DNA of 64,000 nt, taken from NCBI GenBank assembly GCA_011109175.1, contig RDEW01000018.1, positions 803,304-867,303 on the forward strand. The letters run 5' to 3'. The notes beneath the pieces are model-generated. The model saw only the letters and a list, made by a program, of their open reading frames with translations. It ran no database searches and was not told the DNA's origin. The stretch comes from Dicyema japonicum. Taxonomy: Eukaryota; Animalia; Dicyemida. Shown piece by piece: positions 667 through 52,572 of this stretch. How positions within the stretch are numbered: position 1 is the stretch's first letter; the number at the start of each line of letters is the position of its first letter. The position numbers and the translations under genes were made by a program.

Positions 667-927
667 TTATTTATTAACCCCGGATACACCGAGAAAGAAG
701 TTAAAGTAAACAACTAATTAAGTGTATCCAGTTTCCACTTCTACAGAAACAGAGTACATCCGGAATCAGCATAAAAGGTAAAATACGTCCATAGTTGCAG
801 TTGTGGAAACCCCTCCAGTGGAGTGGGGTAGAGCAAATGATCATTTTTTTTTCGTGTCGGCCTGGCACTGGGCCAAAACTGAAACTTCAACCAATTAGCC
901 ACGAAGCACCACATGGCGCTACCAGGC
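667..927 (-). mobile_element. Non-autonomous element SINE2, internally deleted copy
   Basis: Reverse complement of 7195-7518 (head gcgccatgtggtgc...ctaattggttgaag, tail ccggggttaataaa) with an internal deletion. Confidence 0.75.
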
Positions 928-1093
928 TATTTTAGCTTCGATTCTTGAATAAAAGGCAATTTCCATTACACTGCTTAGAGACAACTACAAACATTAAAGA
1001 AATAATTATTTATATATAGTATTAATAAATATTTTAATTATTTAAATTATAATAAAATAAATAAACACGTTTTTTTAGTCTTATCTATTGTGT

Positions 1094-6337: not shown

Positions 6338-7194
6338 AATTTACTAAAATAATTAACCAAAATTACATAAAATAATGGCCTATATTTTAATATTTTATTT
6401 GACCTTTAGGTATATCATGTGTACTTTATTATTTTTTAAATTATTATAATAACATTATATTTTTATATTTTTATTTATTAACATTTAATGACTTTAAACC
6501 TCAAACTCACTAGTTCGGGATCACCTAATGACCGGCCTCCTTAATTGGTCACTAATAACAATTTCTACAAATTATATCCTCATACCCTTTACACATCAAC
6601 CACTTAGAAACCATTTTTGATATATAAATTATTTGTTCTGTTTTGCCACTAAAACTCGAATCAAAAGAATTATTAATGTGGACATGTGGTTAGTGTTGTC
6701 ATAGGTGTGATAGTCATTTTGTGATATGCTGTGACTTGTGGTTTATCCACTAATTGTATTTAATTTCATTAATATTTGTTATTATAAGTGATATTTTGGG
6801 ATCACAAATTAACTGAATACAGAAAGTTTTAGAAAAATAGTGTGGTAATTGCGGTTAAATAATCAAATTGGATTTTATTCATTTATTATTTTGCTTAGTG
6901 TTAATAAAATCATTACAAATATGTTGACCTATATCAGTGATTAAAGAAACATAATGACATGTAATGACTCACAAGTCAAATTGACACAGTTTATCAACGA
7001 TGGCTTGACAAACTCACTTTCATCAGTGAGTGTTAGTAATTTCTCAATATGTGGTTCACTAGTACTATTGTCACATCATGGCTTAAGTTATTGTATGATT
7101 CAAGAGAAGATTAATACCATCAACTTATCAATAGAAGAGGCATATCCTACAAAAAACGACAATTAGAGATTCGACTGACCTTCAATATTAATTC

Positions 7195-7518
7195 ACCACG
7201 TGGCGCCATGTGGTGTTACGTGGCTAATTGGTTGAAGTTTTCTGTTTGTTTTGTCTGTTCCTCCTCTGTCCCTTCCAATTAGAGTGCCGTCATGTGATTC
7301 ACCTGTCTAGATGGTGTCCGGTGCCAGGCTGGCACGAAAAAGGATCATTTTCTCTCCCCCAATTACTGGAGGGGTTTCCACAACTGCAAGCAATGTACGT
7401 ATTTTACCATTAATGCTGATTCCGGATGTACTCTGTTGTTGTAGAAATGGAAACTGGATACACTTAACTAGTTGTTTACTTTAACTTATTTCTCGGTGTA
7501 TCCGGGGTTAATAAAAAA
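7195..7518 (+). mobile_element. Non-autonomous element SINE2: structured head, HDV-like ribozyme fold, family A LINE 3' tail
   Basis: Homologous copies at 667-927 (minus) and 52400-52572; tail actggatacacttaactag...tccggggttaataaa matches LINE 3' ends at 8050-8110 and 52320-52399. Confidence 0.8.
7284..7348 (+). ncRNA. Candidate HDV-like ribozyme fold (diverged copy)
   Basis: P2 gtgatt/ggatcat, P3 cacc/ggtg, P4 tgcc/ggca followed by C-GAAAAA; the P1 3' strand appears shortened. Confidence 0.45.
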
Positions 7519-7639
7519 CCACTCGTATACCCTACGAGTCCTTAGTTTATCGTTAGAACATTAAAATATTGAGTTATAAGGATTATTCGTGAGTTACATG
7601 ACCAACTCAACCACAAACCAATTTTTTGACTGATAAGCA

Positions 7640-8049: not shown

Positions 8050-10799
8050 ATTATTTATTTAATAACCCCGAAAAGGGAACACCAAGAAAGGAGTAAACCA
8101 ACTAATTAAGTGATCCCGGTACGCCTCAACAGGATCGAGAGGTTTTTCCTGTGTTCCTTCAGAGTACCCACGGCTTTCCTGAATAGACAACGATCATCTT
8201 TCATTAGAGTTTGAAGAGGGGTGGGTTTTTCCCCAAATTTCGTGTATTTGAGGCCACTAGCCTTGAATGGAAGAAACGACTTGTTTCTTGGCCACACAGA
8301 CCGATGAAGCCGGAGCCATTATTTTTGATTGCGGCGTGGTCAAGCATTGGAAAGGAAAGACCGGGCGTAGATTCGTTAGACGTGCTAGTTTGCCAATTAG
8401 GGAATTGATTTTGAGTGAATTTGATATCTAAGCTCCATAGGCGCATGAGGCACAAGCATACTCAATCGTCGGTTTTAGGAGTTGATTGAACAGGACGACT
8501 GCCTGGACTTCAAGAGCGGTTTAATTATATTAAGTTTCCTGAGACCTTTTGTCATAACGTTCTTCACATGTTGAGAAAATGTCATCAAAGGGTCAAATGT
8601 CACTCCCAGGATAGTTGAACGAATCTGTAGTAATAAGGAGTCTTCATAAATATTCAAATCAGTGTATGTTTTTCTTTTCTGTCCATGGTGAAGATTGTAT
8701 ACGTTGATTTATCCCTGGATATGGAGAGACGATTCAACTTCAACCAGGCTCCCAGGTCGTCAATATGTGACTAAAGCTCTGATTTTGCTGTCCTCAAGTA
8801 TTTGTTCCTGCTAGCGATGATTAAGTCGTCAGCATAAGTGAGAAGCATTGAATCTGGTCCTCCAGGGCAGGGCAAATCGTGGAGGAATAAGTTGAATAAC
8901 ACCTGAGAGAGGGGCGATCCTTGAGGACGCCATTTGGTAGGAGACGGGACCTCGATCTTGCATGGCCTATACAGACACGTCCTCTTCTTCCGGAGAGAAA
9001 ATTGGCTATCCATCTTTTCAAATCCATCTGAATGGTGGTGTCAAAAACCTTCTTCGTGAGTAATGTTCTCGATACAGAATCGAACGCCTTCTGGATATCC
9101 AGGGAAACCACTATTGTCCGTAGATGGCGTTTCGGTACGTTGAACCCTTCTGATATAAATTGAGACAGTGAAGTCAAATGTGTCATAGTTGAACGCTCAC
9201 ATTTGAAACCATGTTGAAAGTGGCAGTCGGGCAAATAGGGTTTAATTTTCCAGAGTACGAGTTTCTCCATTAGGCGCGATAATGCGTTAATGAAATTGGA
9301 CGGTAGGAAAAAGGTAAGGTTTTCGGTTTTCCTGGTTTTAGGAGTGGTATTATAAGTGAGTTTTTCCATTTGCATGGGATGACGTTCTTGTTAGAAGACA
9401 AATTAAAAATTGACGTAATCGAATTGATTGCAACATTACCAAGGTGTTTTAGCAAAATTCCCGGAATACCGTCAGGACCACACGTATAAGATCTCTTCAT
9501 CGATCTTATAGTCTGTGTGACCTCGGCATGCGTAAATAAATTGATCCACAAAGTTGGTTTAAATTCCGAAGGTGACAAGAATGGGATTTCGAGAAGTCCT
9601 TGTGACGTATGGATGCGTAATATTTCATTAGGTTGTTAGCTTGCACAGTATTTGGAGCAGAAAAAGATTCTGATTCATCTGATAAGTTTAGCTTGATTCG
9701 ACGAATAGTTTTCCATAAAAGACTCGTGGATTTCATATGTCCAATAGATGATCATAGGCGGTTCCACGCCCTATCTTTCTTTTCTCTGATGAGCTTTGTA
9801 ATATGATTTAAGCATTTTATATTTTCCAAATCAGAAGAGGTTTGCAGATGATTCATCTTCAGGGAGTTTCTTTGTTTGACGAGGAGACGAGTCTCCGAGT
9901 CCAGAGTAGGCTTGTAGGATTTGTAAACTGCACGTGGTACAAAACTTTTCAGCTTGAAGTAATACATGGTTTAGATATTCCACTGCTTTGTCGATGGAGC
10001 AAAATGAGGTGGGATCAAAATGTATTAGGTTATGGTCAATGAAGAGTTTGAAATTCGACCAGTCAGCTTTCTTGTAGACCTTGAGCTTTAATTCTACGTG
10101 AGTTATTGAATCGGCTCAGTTTTAATATAATCGGATTATGATCACTATGAAAATCGTAGGAGACATGAAATCTTCGGGGCAATCCTAGAGGAAGCAATAA
10201 ATATGTCGGGGGAGGTTGGGTTGTCATTTCTTCGGATAGGTGTCCTTGTGAAGATATTCGGGTGATTCAGAATCACCATTTTTTCGAGAGAGTCGATAAT
10301 TAGACTCCCCCTCTTGTCTGCCGACTGGGTACTAAGCCATTGCGGATGTTTGGCGTTGAAATCCCCACATAGTACACATTTCATTGTCTTCGGAACATAG
10401 TTATTAGGACAGGATCCCGGCGGTGGAATGTAAATGTTGATTAGAATAAGATGTTCTGACCCATTAATAGGATCAATAGAAATTTGTTCCGCGGTCTTGT
10501 CGTGTAGAATTAAATCATCCACTTGCGAGCTCACATCGTGGAAGGATAAACCGTTTTTAATAATTGTAAGTAAGCCGCCACCACGTCCAATGCGGTCTTT
10601 TCTGATAGAGATGTATCCAGGAAAAAGTGGGGTTGTACTCTTTGTAGAAAGTTTTGACTCCTGGATAAGGCAGATGTCAATCTTGTGCTTCGTTAATAAA
10701 CATCGTAACTCCAGAATCTTTGTTTTTATTCCGTTAGCATTGAGTTGCATAATAACAAGGGGTTTTAATCCAGGGTTTTTTTCAATATCTCCAGAAAGC
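8050..10799 (-). mobile_element. Ingi/Vingi-like non-LTR retrotransposon (2A-APE-RT, no RNase H seen), 5'-truncated at the 2A motif, frameshifted
   Basis: 13-bp TSD aagaatagtcctt at 8037-8049 and 10800-10812; LLSGDIEKNPG; APE motifs QLNANG, IQESKL, GDFNA; RT motifs YRPISL, QHGF, LDIQKAFD, QGSPLS, YADD; 3' end cggggttattaaataaa. Confidence 0.9.
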
Positions 10800-10895
10800 A
10801 AGAATAGTCCTTGGTAAATGTTCATTTCGTTTAAATAATTAATATGATTAAAAATGATATAGTAAAATAATATAATTATTTAAATATTAATAAGC

Positions 10896-12202: not shown

Positions 12203-12290
12203 ATTAATAGCCCCGGGTACATCCAATTTCCACTGCTACAAAAACAGAGTACATCCGGAACCAGCATAAGGTGAAAGACGTCTTATGAAG
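12203..12290 (-). mobile_element. SINE2 3' fragment
   Basis: Near-identical to 720-790 (tccaatttccactgctacaaaaacagagtacatccggaaccagcataa). Confidence 0.55.
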
Positions 12291-16689: not shown

Positions 16690-17000
16690 TTAATTATTAA
16701 CCCCAGACTTACATTCTTTGGTAAGCCCAACAAAAACAATCACAGCTAATCAATCCAAGGAAGGAACCCTATGAAGTACTTCTGTTTGTGCCGACCAAAT
16801 CTATCCTCCAATAGTCTATTACAGGCTTCCGAAGAAAGGTGGAGAAGTAGGTCCGCCCTCTTCCAATTTCTTCGCAAGTCCTACCGTCACGGACATGGAA
16901 TATCTTCAGTGGATTTGGATAGGGAAAAAGGTAGTAAGATCTCTTTCAACAACTGTGTCGTGCAGAAGTCGTCGCCTCAGGGTGGGATCTGTTTTTAACG
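16690..17000 (-). mobile_element. LINE family B 3' end
   Basis: Homologous to 40560-40840 and 34150-34275 (LLEDRFGRHKQ...GFLPW); ends ggggttaataa. Confidence 0.6.
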
Positions 17001-26046: not shown

Positions 26047-26571
26047 ATTATTTATTTATTTTAAAACCCAACAAGAAAGAATTAACTTGCTAAATTAAGT
26101 GATCCCAGCCTCCAACACCTCTCGAATTCTCTTCGAATGCTCCGCCAGTGAACCAACAGCGTTTCCTAAGTGTCTTCTTTTATTTCTGCAGAGGAATTCT
26201 ATCGGATGCACTTTTTTAATGCCGATCTGAATTCCTCCACATGAACCACCCTCTCTCTGAATGGGTTTTTTAGCTCATTGCACATATGTAGGAAACCCAG
26301 ACCATTTCTCACCGTCGCTTCCTCTGAATGCAGACTGGGGACGGATGTGGAGTCTAATTGTGTATGCCTCATAATCTTCCTTCTGAGAAAGTTCATAATA
26401 ACGTGGCGTCATGCGATTCACCTTTTGTTGTGGTGGCGCTCAGTGCAAGTTCTGCATGGAAAAAAACCGTTCGACTTTCCCTACCCATCTGCGATCTTTA
26501 GAAGGGTGGCCTATCTATTCCCCTGTTTTCTCTTTACTACTTCTGTCTGGTGATGTAGAACCTAATCCGGG
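26047..26571. mobile_element. Family A LINE insertion with inverted 5' end (twin-priming-like)
   Basis: 12-bp TSD acttgattcctt at 26035-26046 and 26572-26583; 3' end on minus (26047 to about 26402) joined to the element 5' end on plus (about 26403-26571, ribozyme fold plus LLLLSGDVEPNPG). Confidence 0.8.
26405..26470 (+). ncRNA. Candidate HDV-like ribozyme at the LINE 5' end
   Basis: P1 ggcgt/gcgct, P2 gcgatt/aaccgt (one mismatch), P3 cacc/ggtg, P4 tgca/tgca; the putative catalytic C position (26457) is T here. Confidence 0.5.
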
Positions 26572-26639
26572 ACTTGATTCCTTGAAAGAATTTAATTTTA
26601 ATGAAAAACGTGACACTAGGTTGTCTAGTTGAGTCTTTC

Positions 26640-34149: not shown

Positions 34150-34275
34150 TGGACTATTGGAGGATGTATTTGGTAGGCACAAGCAGACATTATCCCTTGG
34201 GTTCCTTCCTTGGATTAATTAGTTGTGACTTTTTTTGATGGGTTTACAAAAGATTGTGAGCCTGGGGTTAAAAAA
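34150..34275 (+). mobile_element. LINE family B 3' end
   Basis: ctattggaggatgtatttggtaggcacaagc...gggttccttccttgga...cctggggttaaaaa, as at 40720-40835. Confidence 0.55.
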
Positions 34276-38709: not shown

Positions 38710-39590
38710 ATTATTAAAAACCAAAAATCACCGACAAATTAAATAACTACATGGCCGTCAGGTGATTCCGGCCGCCTCAAGTAGCCATCTCATTCTTGCT
38801 CGGTGTTCTTCCCGGGTTCCAACGCATTACCGGATTGGGCGGGGGTTTCTAACTTTTTTGGAAGGTAGTAGGGCTCCGGTTTTCCTCACTAATTCCTCAA
38901 AAGGTGTAGGGTTTAGAGGTGTCCAAGAAAACCTTTGCAAAGCCTTACTGGTCATTTTTGTAAGGTATTAATTTTTTCTATATTCGTGTTTGATAGGTTG
39001 GTTCCCCATGCAGCAAACCCGTAAGTTAGAGACGGTTGAAAATACTGCACGTAGAGTGAGTCCAAATTTGAGTTGAAACACCATTATATTGTCCAAGGAG
39101 TGTTTTAACAAAATTTAGCTTTTGTAGTGCCGAAGAGATGACGTTGTCGATGTGTTTGCTGAAGGTCAAGAGTGGGTCGTAAGTTACGCCCAGTATCTTG
39201 ACCGAGTTGGTCGTGGAGATTGAGTTTCCATTTATGGTTACACATGGAGCAGAGTTTGTCAATCTTCTGTTTGTTGTGAAAATTATTGTATAAGACTTTT
39301 CGTGACTTGTATGTAGAATGTTCTTAACGAGCCAACAGTTCAGATCGTCCAATGAAGCTTGTATCCGGTAAACAGCAGTGTTAACGCACTGGTCTTTGAC
39401 TGTGACGATTATATCATCCGCATATGTCAGAACCAGAGTATCGTCACTGGTAAGGGAGGACACATCATTTAAGAATAGGTTGAATAGGTGTGTGAAAGTG
39501 GAGATCTTTGAGGGACCCCATTTGGAAGGAACTTGGTCACTGATCTAGTTTTTCCAGCAGTTACTCTTCCTTTTCTTCCATTTAGGAAAT
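38710..39590 (-). mobile_element. Family A-type LINE, RT C-terminal half and 3' end
   Basis: LTYADDII and KILGVTYDPLLTFSKHI; AT-rich tail at about 38710. Confidence 0.75.
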
Positions 39591-40560: not shown

Positions 40561-40840
40561 GATTGACGGAAGTATAAATTTGTTGACCTTCTACCTGAAC
40601 AAATCCTCTGGTAGAGGTTACATTATGAAAACTATTGCGCCGAATATTGAAGTTATGTCCGCGATGGTAGAAATGGAAGAGATCGGACCTACTTCTCCAT
40701 CTCTCTTCGGAAGCCTGTAGTGTACTATTGGAGGATGGATTTGGTCGGCACAAGCAAATGTTCTCCCTTGGGTTCCTTCCTTGGAGTGATCGTTATGACT
40801 GATTGTGCTGGCCTTATCGTAAGCGTGGGGTTAATAATAA
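40561..40840 (+). mobile_element. LINE family B 3' end
   Basis: KWKRSDLLLHLSSEACSVLLEDGFGRHKQMFSLGFLPW then ggggttaataat; homologous to 16690-17000. Confidence 0.65.
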
Positions 40841-50759: not shown

Positions 50760-52399
50760 CGTGGACAACTCAAATGAGTGGGAGATATAAAAAAAGATGC
50801 CATCTGATGGACCTGGAGTCCTTGACAGCCCTCAGACATCTGAATAAAAGGATCAGTCAGAGTATAAAAGAACACAAGGACAAGAGATGGCTAGTTAACC
50901 ACCTCGACAGGAAAAGTACATCCCGACATTTACAAGTCAAGTCGGAGCTGGATGATGCAGACGGAACCGGAAAGTCTTTTCCTGAACACTTATGCCACCT
51001 ACATCCTAACACCCTTATGAAACATTACGCTGGAATTAGCTTCAAACCATTCTCGAAACACCTGGACATTAAGGTGCGTGCCCATAAACCGAAGAAGAAA
51101 CCTTACCACGAACTATTCTCAGATGACCAAGTCTTGGATGTGATCACCAGATTAAAGAGCTCACGGGCGTGCGGGCCTGACAAAGTATCTTCTATTCACC
51201 TAAAACATCTAAGCCACTACGCAATTTGCAACCTCACGCATATATACAACCTGTCCATCAACTATAATATTACTCCCAAGATTTGGAAGAATTCTATCAT
51301 CAGACCGATATTGAAGGATGGGAAACCAGAGACAGAACCTACCTCCTACAGGCCTATTTCCGTTACCATCACACTGTCAAAAATTATGGAGAAACTTGTA
51401 CTATCAGTCATTATTCCGTATCTTCCACGTCCTATATTTCAACATGGTTTCCTCCGCGGTAGGTCCACCGCTACATACTTGGCAACCCTATCGCAGTCCA
51501 TTGCCGACGGTTTTAACACCCATCCCCCGCCTCACAAACGCACAATCTTGGTTTCTATTGACATCAACAAAGCCATTGACACTGTTTCGAGGAAAATCCT
51601 GGTTGGAAAAATATTTTCTACTAATATTCGTCCGAATGTGAAATTATGACTGGCCAACTTTTTGTCTGGAAGACGTGGAAGAGTATTCAGTGGTGATCTC
51701 AGATCTAGATCACGATTACTACCGAACGGGGTACCCCAGGGGTCTCCACTTTCACCAATTCTATTCAACCTATTCCTACACGACCTACCTAATGATGGAG
51801 ACGAAGATTCCCTGCTATCATCCTACGCAGACGATGTAGTCATTGCAATACGAAACCGCTCGACGCAAATCGCATCCCTTAAAACTCAGACAAAATTGAA
51901 CACTCTCCACGATTAGAGGACCACGAGGAACATGGACTTTTCCGTTTCTACCCTCTACCAACAAACAATCGCGCCTGCCGTTGAGTATGCCTCCGTTGCA
52001 TGGAGATTCGCGCTATCGGAGTCTATGGTCCAAAGAATCAACTCGATACACCGGAAAACAATCAGTACGCTAATGGATCAACAGTCGACCCACTACTCAT
52101 GGAAGCTAAGATCCGTAGTCGTGGCTCCGGATTTCTTCGCGTCTGTGAGGAAGATGGTAATTCGCTTCGCCTGATCCTTTCCACGGCAAGAGAAAACCGA
52201 TTGGATAAGAAATTCCCCTCCCCGATCGGATTCCTTTGCAAGATCGAGAGAAGGCTCTTCCGGAAAGTAGTGGGGACGATGGAAGATCACAGACGCCGAA
52301 TGGCACAATTGATTGCCGAGGACTGGGATCACCTAACTGTTTAACTCTTTTGTCTTTCTTTCTCGGTTTCCCGGGGTTATTAAAATAAAATAAATAAAT
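50760..52399 (+). mobile_element. Family A LINE, 5'-truncated and internally deleted
   Basis: SRACGPD, SYRPIS, QHGFLRGRST, DINKAIDTV, GVPQGSPLSP, YADD, then a jump to the C-terminus WDHL and tail cccggggttattaaaataaaa. Confidence 0.85.
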
Positions 52400-52572
52400 G
52401 CCGCGTGGCGCCATGTAGTGCTTTGTGGCTAATTGGTTGAAGTTTCAGTTTTGTTCGTCTGTTCCCCTTCTTTCTTCCTATTAGAGTGGCGTCATGTGAT
52501 CCACAATTCTAGGTGGCACCCAGTGCTAGGCCGGCACGGAAAAGGATCACTCCCCCACTCCACTGGGGCTTT
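52400..52572 (+). mobile_element. SINE2 5' part (head plus ribozyme fold), 3'-truncated
   Basis: Colinear with 7195-7370. Confidence 0.75.
52488..52550 (+). ncRNA. Candidate HDV-like ribozyme (best-folding copy)
   Basis: P1a ggcgt, J1/2 cat, P2a gtgatc, P3a cac, L3, P3b gtg, P1b gcacc, cag, P4 tgct/ggca, C52537-GGAAAA, P2b gatcac; helix order matches HDV. Confidence 0.6.

Follow-up and report, generated by a model that had tools for sequence, protein, structure and literature searches.

The window, a 64,000-nucleotide stretch of Dicyema japonicum contig RDEW01000018.1, contains SINE and LINE copies that have a motif of about 65 nt in common (Table 1). A pattern search of the window with the 19-nt 5' half of this motif returned positions 7284, 26403 and 52486 on the forward strand with 0-1 mismatch (0.00 matches expected), and the 3' half was found at the same three forward sites and additionally at 848-870 on the reverse strand (0.19 expected). 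When the window was scanned, with filters off, by a covariance model built from the three copies, those copies scored 97.5, 94 and 80.6 bits and the partial copy at 848-873 (-) scored 18.9 bits, with no further motif copy in the window at E<0.5. The first-pass annotation had described the recurrence of this motif at three forward sites and, in part, at a reverse site; chance expects none, and the recurrence was reproduced at all of these sites, while the starts given for two of them were off by 2 nt and are corrected here to 26403 and 52486. Motif sequences readable for analysis amount to three and a half copies, all of them in the window. A query of protein databases with the RT gave three distant matches, the best relative being 39% identical, and a 563-kb ENA contig from one of these three matches carries no motif. 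Scans of metagenome, genome and viral contigs for the motif returned nothing except one chance bacterial match, and a HMMER search with the leader peptide returned repeat proteins only (LLLSG..EPN-like units), which we regard as spurious. For the host ELO gene, the best protein match reached 45% identity.

Table 1. Motif copies, the elements that carry them and related features of the window.
Feature	Position	Strand	Remarks
Motif copy A (n1-n65), in SINE copy A	7284-7348	+	Pattern and covariance-model searches
Motif copy B, in SINE copy B	52486-52550	+	Candidate catalytic C at 52537
Motif copy C, start of LINE 5' fragment	26403-26470	+	ATG at 26411 inside (J1/2-P2a)
Partial motif: P4, J4/2, start of P2b	848-873	-	Pattern and covariance-model searches
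Full-length SINE copy A: head, motif, spacer, LINE-type 3' tail	7195-7518	+	
SINE head, ~88 nt	7196-7283	+	First ~16 nt GTGGCGCCATGTGGTG, resembling motif start
LINE-type 3' tail of SINE copy A	7393-7518	+	~125 nt, terminus CCGGGGTTAATAA
SINE copy B, 3'-truncated	52400-52566	+	Directly behind a LINE 3' tail
SINE copy with 13-bp target-site duplication	667-932	-	Duplication AAGAATCGAAGCT; without 5' half of motif
Copy A, 5' helices	P1a 7286-7291, P2a 7294-7300, P3a 7301-7303, L3 7304-7309, P3b 7310-7312	+	
Copy A, 3' helices	P1b 7313-7318, J1/4 7319-7320, P4 7321-7325 with 7331-7335	+	
Copy A, end	J4/2 7336-7341, P2b 7342-7348	+	Candidate catalytic C at 7335
Leader ORF, 73 codons, opened inside motif	26411-26629	+	Runs into GDVEPNPG
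2A-like motif GDVEPNPG-L	26549-26575	+	GDVEPNPG itself 26549-26572
Related LINE with APE, RT and short 2A-like leader	8055-10825	-	Tail CGGGGTTATTAA
2A-like GDIEKNPG-L in related LINE	10766-10792	-	
3' tail of LINE with RT at 50774-51649	52322-52395	+	~70% like SINE tail
Terminal signature sites	671-683, 7502-7514, 8059-8071, 12204-12216, 16694-16706, 34262-34274, 40825-40837, 52371-52383		

The SINE family begins with the 5' end sequence AGCCGCGTGGCGCC, and the four parts of copy A bear out the proposal that its motif sits between a head and a LINE 3' tail. About 45 nt of the spacer after the motif can still be aligned to the leader region of the LINE; the tail shows 68-84% likeness to LINE tails and has the terminal CCGGGGTTAWTAA in common with the LINE 3' ends of the window. 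By BLAST, SINE copy A is 88% identical to the copy at 667-871 (-) and 78% to copy B, and the LINE 5' fragment is 71% identical to SINE copy B over 72 nt. The motif is common to the SINE family and to a LINE 5' fragment with a 2A-like leader, as had been annotated, and the hallmarks of a LINE-mobilised SINE are present, namely a short, non-coding and abundant element with a target-site duplication and a 3' tail shared with LINEs. The LINE to which the 5' fragment belongs is a candidate source of the SINE 3' tail. In the SINE motif the ATG is directly followed by TGA, therefore coding cannot explain the conservation of the motif in the SINE. The 5' end AGCCGCG-TGGCGC has the look of what we take to be a tRNA 5' end with an A box; ARAGORN and Rfam found no tRNA in the SINE head.

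The abundance of the family was assessed with Logan contigs (not reads) of four public runs, which were placed on positions 7150-7560 at a likeness of at least 80%. Contig depth is more than 100-fold higher inside the SINE (7192 to 7513) than outside, with 8,453 contigs of the largest run, X2, placed on the SINE region; judged by contig depth, the SINE family is very abundant. Full-length SINEs dominate the family in the contig data, and 82 X2 contigs end at the true SINE 5' end, 7199. Copy A proved to be an outlier of its own family, the majority letter being different at positions 7287, 7299, 7311, 7315, 7317, 7320 and 7330, and at these seven positions the majority letters are those of copies B and/or C. 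A majority version of the motif was obtained by replacing these seven letters of copy A, which were chosen regardless of structure. Further polymorphic sites of the family are n4 (C or G), n16, n20, n31 (G or A), n43 and n47. Run X4, a different sample, holds no contig that is at least 99% alike and has zero depth on the unique flank, yet the SINE family is present in it; X4 is probably another strain or species, or an RNA sample.

On the LINE side, no APE or RT was found after the leader ORF at 26411-26629, and the LINE segment at 26403 is a fragment or an internally deleted element. The LINE copy at 8055-10825 (-), whose leader is shorter than that of the fragment and whose tail is of the same type as that of the SINE, has no motif upstream of it. 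A paralogous flank did not reveal the 5' boundary of the LINE fragment, because the homology dwindles about 100 nt upstream. The segment had been described as running into a 2A motif, and GDVEPNPG is indeed there, while the next residue is L and not P: both 2A-like motifs of the window read NPG-L and depart from the signature GD(V/I)ExNPG-P. The 2A/StopGo signature ends in P, and a change from PGP to PGD abolished activity in one case (PMC3708506). NPG-L occurs in two different LINE families, which do not use the same codon for this Leu (CTT, TTA); unless both copies are decayed, the lineage uses a non-canonical StopGo signature. As 2A sequences are present in several animal LINE clades (Rex1, Crack, L2, L2A, CR1 and Ingi; PMC3708506), the 2A-like leader is no pointer to the Ingi/Vingi affiliation that had been put forward for this system.

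The folding potential of the motif was analysed with a relaxed HDV descriptor (P1: 4-8 bp, with its start within the first 3 nt; J1/2: 0-6 nt; P2: 4-8 bp; P3: 3-5 bp, closed by an L3 of 4-10 nt; P1' immediately 3' of P3'; J1/4: 0-4 nt; P4: a hairpin; J4/2: 1-8 nt). The majority version fits this descriptor with four helices in strict HDV order, without mismatch and with 22 bp in total. P1 pairs n3-8 with n30-35 (6 bp, GGCGUC/GGCGCC), P2 pairs n11-17 with n59-65 (7 bp), P3 pairs n18-21 with n26-29 (4 bp, listed as 3 bp in copy A) and P4 pairs n38-42 with n48-52 (5 bp). The same letters permit an alternative register with a P3 of CCAC/GUGG, a P1 of GGCG/CGCC (4 bp), a P2 of 5 bp and an 8-nt L3, whose UG could pair with the CA of J1/4 as P1.1; from the present sequence analysis, the two registers are indistinguishable. 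The majority version can form the P1.1 pairs U21-A37 and G22-C36 only with a 3-bp P3, and on the three window copies 50% of the P1.1 cells pair. Our first model, with an 8-bp P1 from n1 containing a G.G mismatch and with no P3, was rejected (-11.2 versus -17.9 kcal/mol for comparable nested parts).

This total of 22 bp was reached by 1 of 200,000 dinucleotide-preserving shuffles of the majority motif. As a statistic, the plain base-pair count was abandoned, since AU and GU are counted fully in it and it is unsafe in an AT-/GT-rich genome, where about 45 start positions of the window reach 22 bp if wider spans are allowed; we therefore rescored with GC-weighting (GC=3, AU=2, GU=1). The majority motif obtained a score of 56, whereas the maximum was 51 among the 127,880 start positions on both strands of the window and 52 among 150,000 shuffles. 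The best background match to the descriptor (39164-39237, forward strand, score 51) is found opposite LINE RT coding sequence, in antisense orientation, does not recur as a unit and is taken as chance. In the three real copies, 87% of the pair cells hold standard pairs, versus 32-55% with the partners slid. Three pairs change on both sides among these copies, two in P2 and one in P4, the latter going through C-G, U.G and A-U and including a transversion pair from C-G to A-U.

The covariation itself is weak in the three window copies (40 of 500 column shuffles match it), each of which breaks 2-3 pairs, and of the eight frequent polymorphisms that the family has at paired positions, five leave the pair intact. 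The nested-fold energies of the real copies are unremarkable (z about 0), and that of the majority version has a z of -1.3. The helix order reported in the first-pass annotation stands and, with the majority letters of the family, is far beyond chance. Two of its details had to be amended: a P1 of about 5 bp and a P1.1 that was not evident give way, with the majority letters, to a 6-bp P1 and a possible 2-bp P1.1 (UG/CA). The compensatory changes claimed for P2 and P4 are present as the double changes described above; two P2 pairs are broken in the LINE copy. Taken together, the descriptor, shuffle and pair statistics imply that the master sequence of the family truly has the interleaved order of helices. 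The reading of the motif with the best support is a structured RNA module with HDV topology that is derived from a LINE 5' end and carried by a SINE.

The question of whether this module is a ribozyme leads to its core. In HDV, P1 has 7 bp and P3 has 3 bp, both lengths being geometrically linked; here P1 is 4-6 bp long, depending on the register, and P3 4-5 bp. In the HDV-like family, P1 begins with the cleaved nucleotide and has a G.U wobble as its first pair. The P1 of the module starts at n3, two bases inside the conserved block, with G1-U2 being conserved in the LINE, the SINE core and the SINE head, and it opens with a G-C pair in the SINE and with a G.U pair in the LINE copy. The J4/2 of HDV carries C-G-A-A directly after P4. 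These letters follow P4 directly in the module too, C-GAA being present in all SINE copies of the window. The candidate catalytic C (n52) is a U in the LINE copy, is replaced by A in about 45% of the depth in X4 (A is below 1% in X1 and X2 and absent in X5), and is unpaired only if the pair G38-C52 opens. The SINE has its motif about 86 nt in from its terminus, so that a cut would remove the head, yet full-length SINEs dominate. Among the loose ends listed (24 of 578), which are contig ends and unable to show RNA ends, there is no pile-up at 7284-7286. Rfam gave no match on the window at the gathering score, nor on any copy at E<=10, which is weak evidence because the HDV-family models are narrow. 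Non-GC P1.1 helices occur in fast HDV ribozymes (PMC13635239). A twister variant was considered and rejected, its signature blocks GUCCCAAGC and GAGGG being absent. Because the core features are inconclusive and the curated models are without match, we do not count the module among the HDV-like family; it may nonetheless function as an HDV-like ribozyme does.

We propose that the 65-nt block may be a structured RNA module that originated at the 5' end of an APE-type LINE having one ORF and a 2A-like leader, and that the SINE may have been assembled from a head, about 110 nt of LINE 5' sequence and a LINE 3' tail, with the module as its core. The RNA is predicted to fold into a nested double pseudoknot of HDV helix order that would hold the LINE start codon in J1/2-P2. 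The likeliest specific mechanism would be an HDV-type cut just 5' of P1, putatively between n2 and n3. Such a cut would free the LINE RNA from an upstream co-transcript and would leave a folded, uncapped 5' end beside the AUG, as in R2 and L1Tc. The predicted HDV-type self-cleavage of the module in its LINE context is plausible, and we favour it tentatively, stopping short of an even chance; catalysis, cut site and role of the module in the SINE are all things that we infer. It is rather improbable, in our judgement, that the module would represent a new, compact form of the HDV fold, or else a ribozyme class of its own with the same helix order, having a short P1, a long P3 and the start codon in the knot, which would both process the 2A-leader LINEs of a divergent animal lineage and prime their translation and would form the central domain of a SINE superfamily.

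The structural statistics would be the same for a real pseudoknot that does not cut itself. Such a structure may be a predicted handle for the LINE protein, in the way that R2 5' RNA binds the R2 protein, or may act in cap-independent initiation or 5'-protection around the AUG, with the SINE mimicking the LINE RNA. A pseudoknot of this kind would explain why the core is non-canonical, why the candidate C varies and why the motif lies inside a SINE that is mostly full-length, and the AUG inside the fold would suit it as well. It would, however, turn the C-GAA after P4 into a coincidence, and at LINE 5' ends, to our knowledge, the folds with HDV helix order described to date have turned out to be ribozymes. 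We consider a purely non-catalytic role possible, if somewhat doubtful.

The motif might also be without any function at the RNA level and owe its conservation to descent alone, to a DNA-level internal promoter or to coding in the LINE, the SINE being a passenger of chimeric origin. Copies of transposable elements resemble each other through descent alone, each window copy has 2-3 broken pairs, one SINE copy with a target-site duplication lacks the 5' half of the motif, and in the LINE the block encodes the N-terminus; moreover, Pr77 of L1Tc is also a promoter (PMC1874656). A passenger sequence is, however, not expected to hold 22 bp in one interleaved order (p<1e-5), the double changes between the LINE and SINE versions preserve the pairs, and coding is powerless in the SINE with its ATG-TGA, all of which makes this explanation unlikely. 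It is highly improbable that the HDV-like order is merely the chance product of a G/C- and GU-rich repeat: the base-pair count alone is weak on this point, in view of the roughly 45 window positions that reach the same count with full AU/GU and wider spans, but the GC-weighted score is unmatched in the window or in 150,000 shuffles.

HDV-like ribozymes occur at the 5' ends of several LINEs, among them R2, L1Tc and several insect LINEs. We know of the combination of a ribozyme, a 2A leader and a motif-bearing non-autonomous partner in trypanosomatids only. There, L1Tc/NARTc carries an HDV-like ribozyme and a 2A sequence (PMC3185411, PMC3383444). The elements described here resemble L1Tc/NARTc and ingi/RIME, with their Pr77/L1TcRz, in having an element of HDV topology in the first ~77 nt of a single-ORF APE LINE, an N-terminal 2A-type leader and the same 5' element in the non-autonomous partner (PMC3185411, PMC3383444, PMC4035085). 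They differ in the animal host and in the extra head of the SINE, hence the internal motif. L1TcRz has a 7-bp P1 from nucleotide +1 of the element and demonstrated cleavage (PMC3185411), whereas the module has a P1 of 4-6 bp from n3 and a predicted fold only. There is no sequence homology to L1TcRz, as the shared 8-mer GTGCCAGG falls in different helices.

R2 and its SIDE derivatives are alike in that a 5' ribozyme fold and the 3' UTR are kept together in short non-autonomous elements (PMC3414825), and R2 also has its fold beside the translation start; unlike the LINE studied here, R2 is a site-specific LINE with a REL endonuclease and without 2A, and its ribozymes fit the canonical core. Leishmania SIDER2, a short degenerate retroposon with one Pr77 signature at its 5' end and a second one inside (PMC4035085), recalls the echo of the motif in the SINE head, except that the first 'signature' of our SINE consists of only the first 16 nt. 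Perere-3 of Schistosoma mansoni, an animal LINE without site specificity, has a 5' self-cleaving ribozyme whose cut adjoins target-site duplications (PMC8501958), but this ribozyme is of another class, the twister-variant one. With HDV, CPEB3, C. briggsae and other HDV-like ribozymes the module has in common the helix order, the C-G-A-A after P4 and a possible 2-bp non-GC P1.1. It departs from them by its short P1, its long P3, an L3 of 4-8 nt depending on the register, the G-C as first P1 pair in the SINE, a longer, A-rich J4/2 (6-9 nt) and the missing Rfam match.

An animal counterpart, if true, would mean that the trypanosomatid design arose or persisted far more widely. It would also widen the limits of sequence and geometry within which HDV-type ribozymes are searched for, and would give a molecular, testable function to the conserved core domain of an extremely abundant SINE family. 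If the module is non-catalytic, it would still represent a well-supported conserved pseudoknot around a LINE start codon, with a bearing on the translation or recognition of uncapped or co-transcribed LINE RNAs.

Several further observations concern the build of the SINE. The first nucleotides of its head echo the start of the motif over 16 nt (GTGGCGCCATGTGGTG versus GTGGCGTCATGTGATC; 7196-7215 versus 7284-7299, and also at 52401-52420). The GGCGCC of this echo is self-complementary and could replace P1a by pairing with P1b across about 85 nt. In 40 X2 contigs, the SINE head runs up to ...CTTCCTATTAGA (7267) and is followed by a different body, ATGGGGGTATTTGCAA..., an arrangement suggestive of a modular superfamily of SINEs whose cores can be exchanged; in these head-sharing contigs the module boundary falls where the motif starts. 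In most runs, contig depth over P4, J4/2 and P2b (7318-7359), which make up the 3' half of the motif, exceeds that over the 5' half by a factor of up to about 10. This excess is partly an artefact of alignment clipping, because copy A differs at five positions between 7311 and 7320; alternatively, the 3' half may be common to more families.

The SINE flanks in the contigs are AT-rich, and the SINE seems to prefer A/T-rich targets for insertion. Copy B begins right after the A-rich end of a LINE tail (52371-52400). Finally, a terminal signature, C(C/T)GGGGTTAWTAA, was found at no fewer than eight LINE or SINE 3' ends of the window, with 11 matches versus 2.9 expected, which points to a putative 3' recognition element common to several LINE families.
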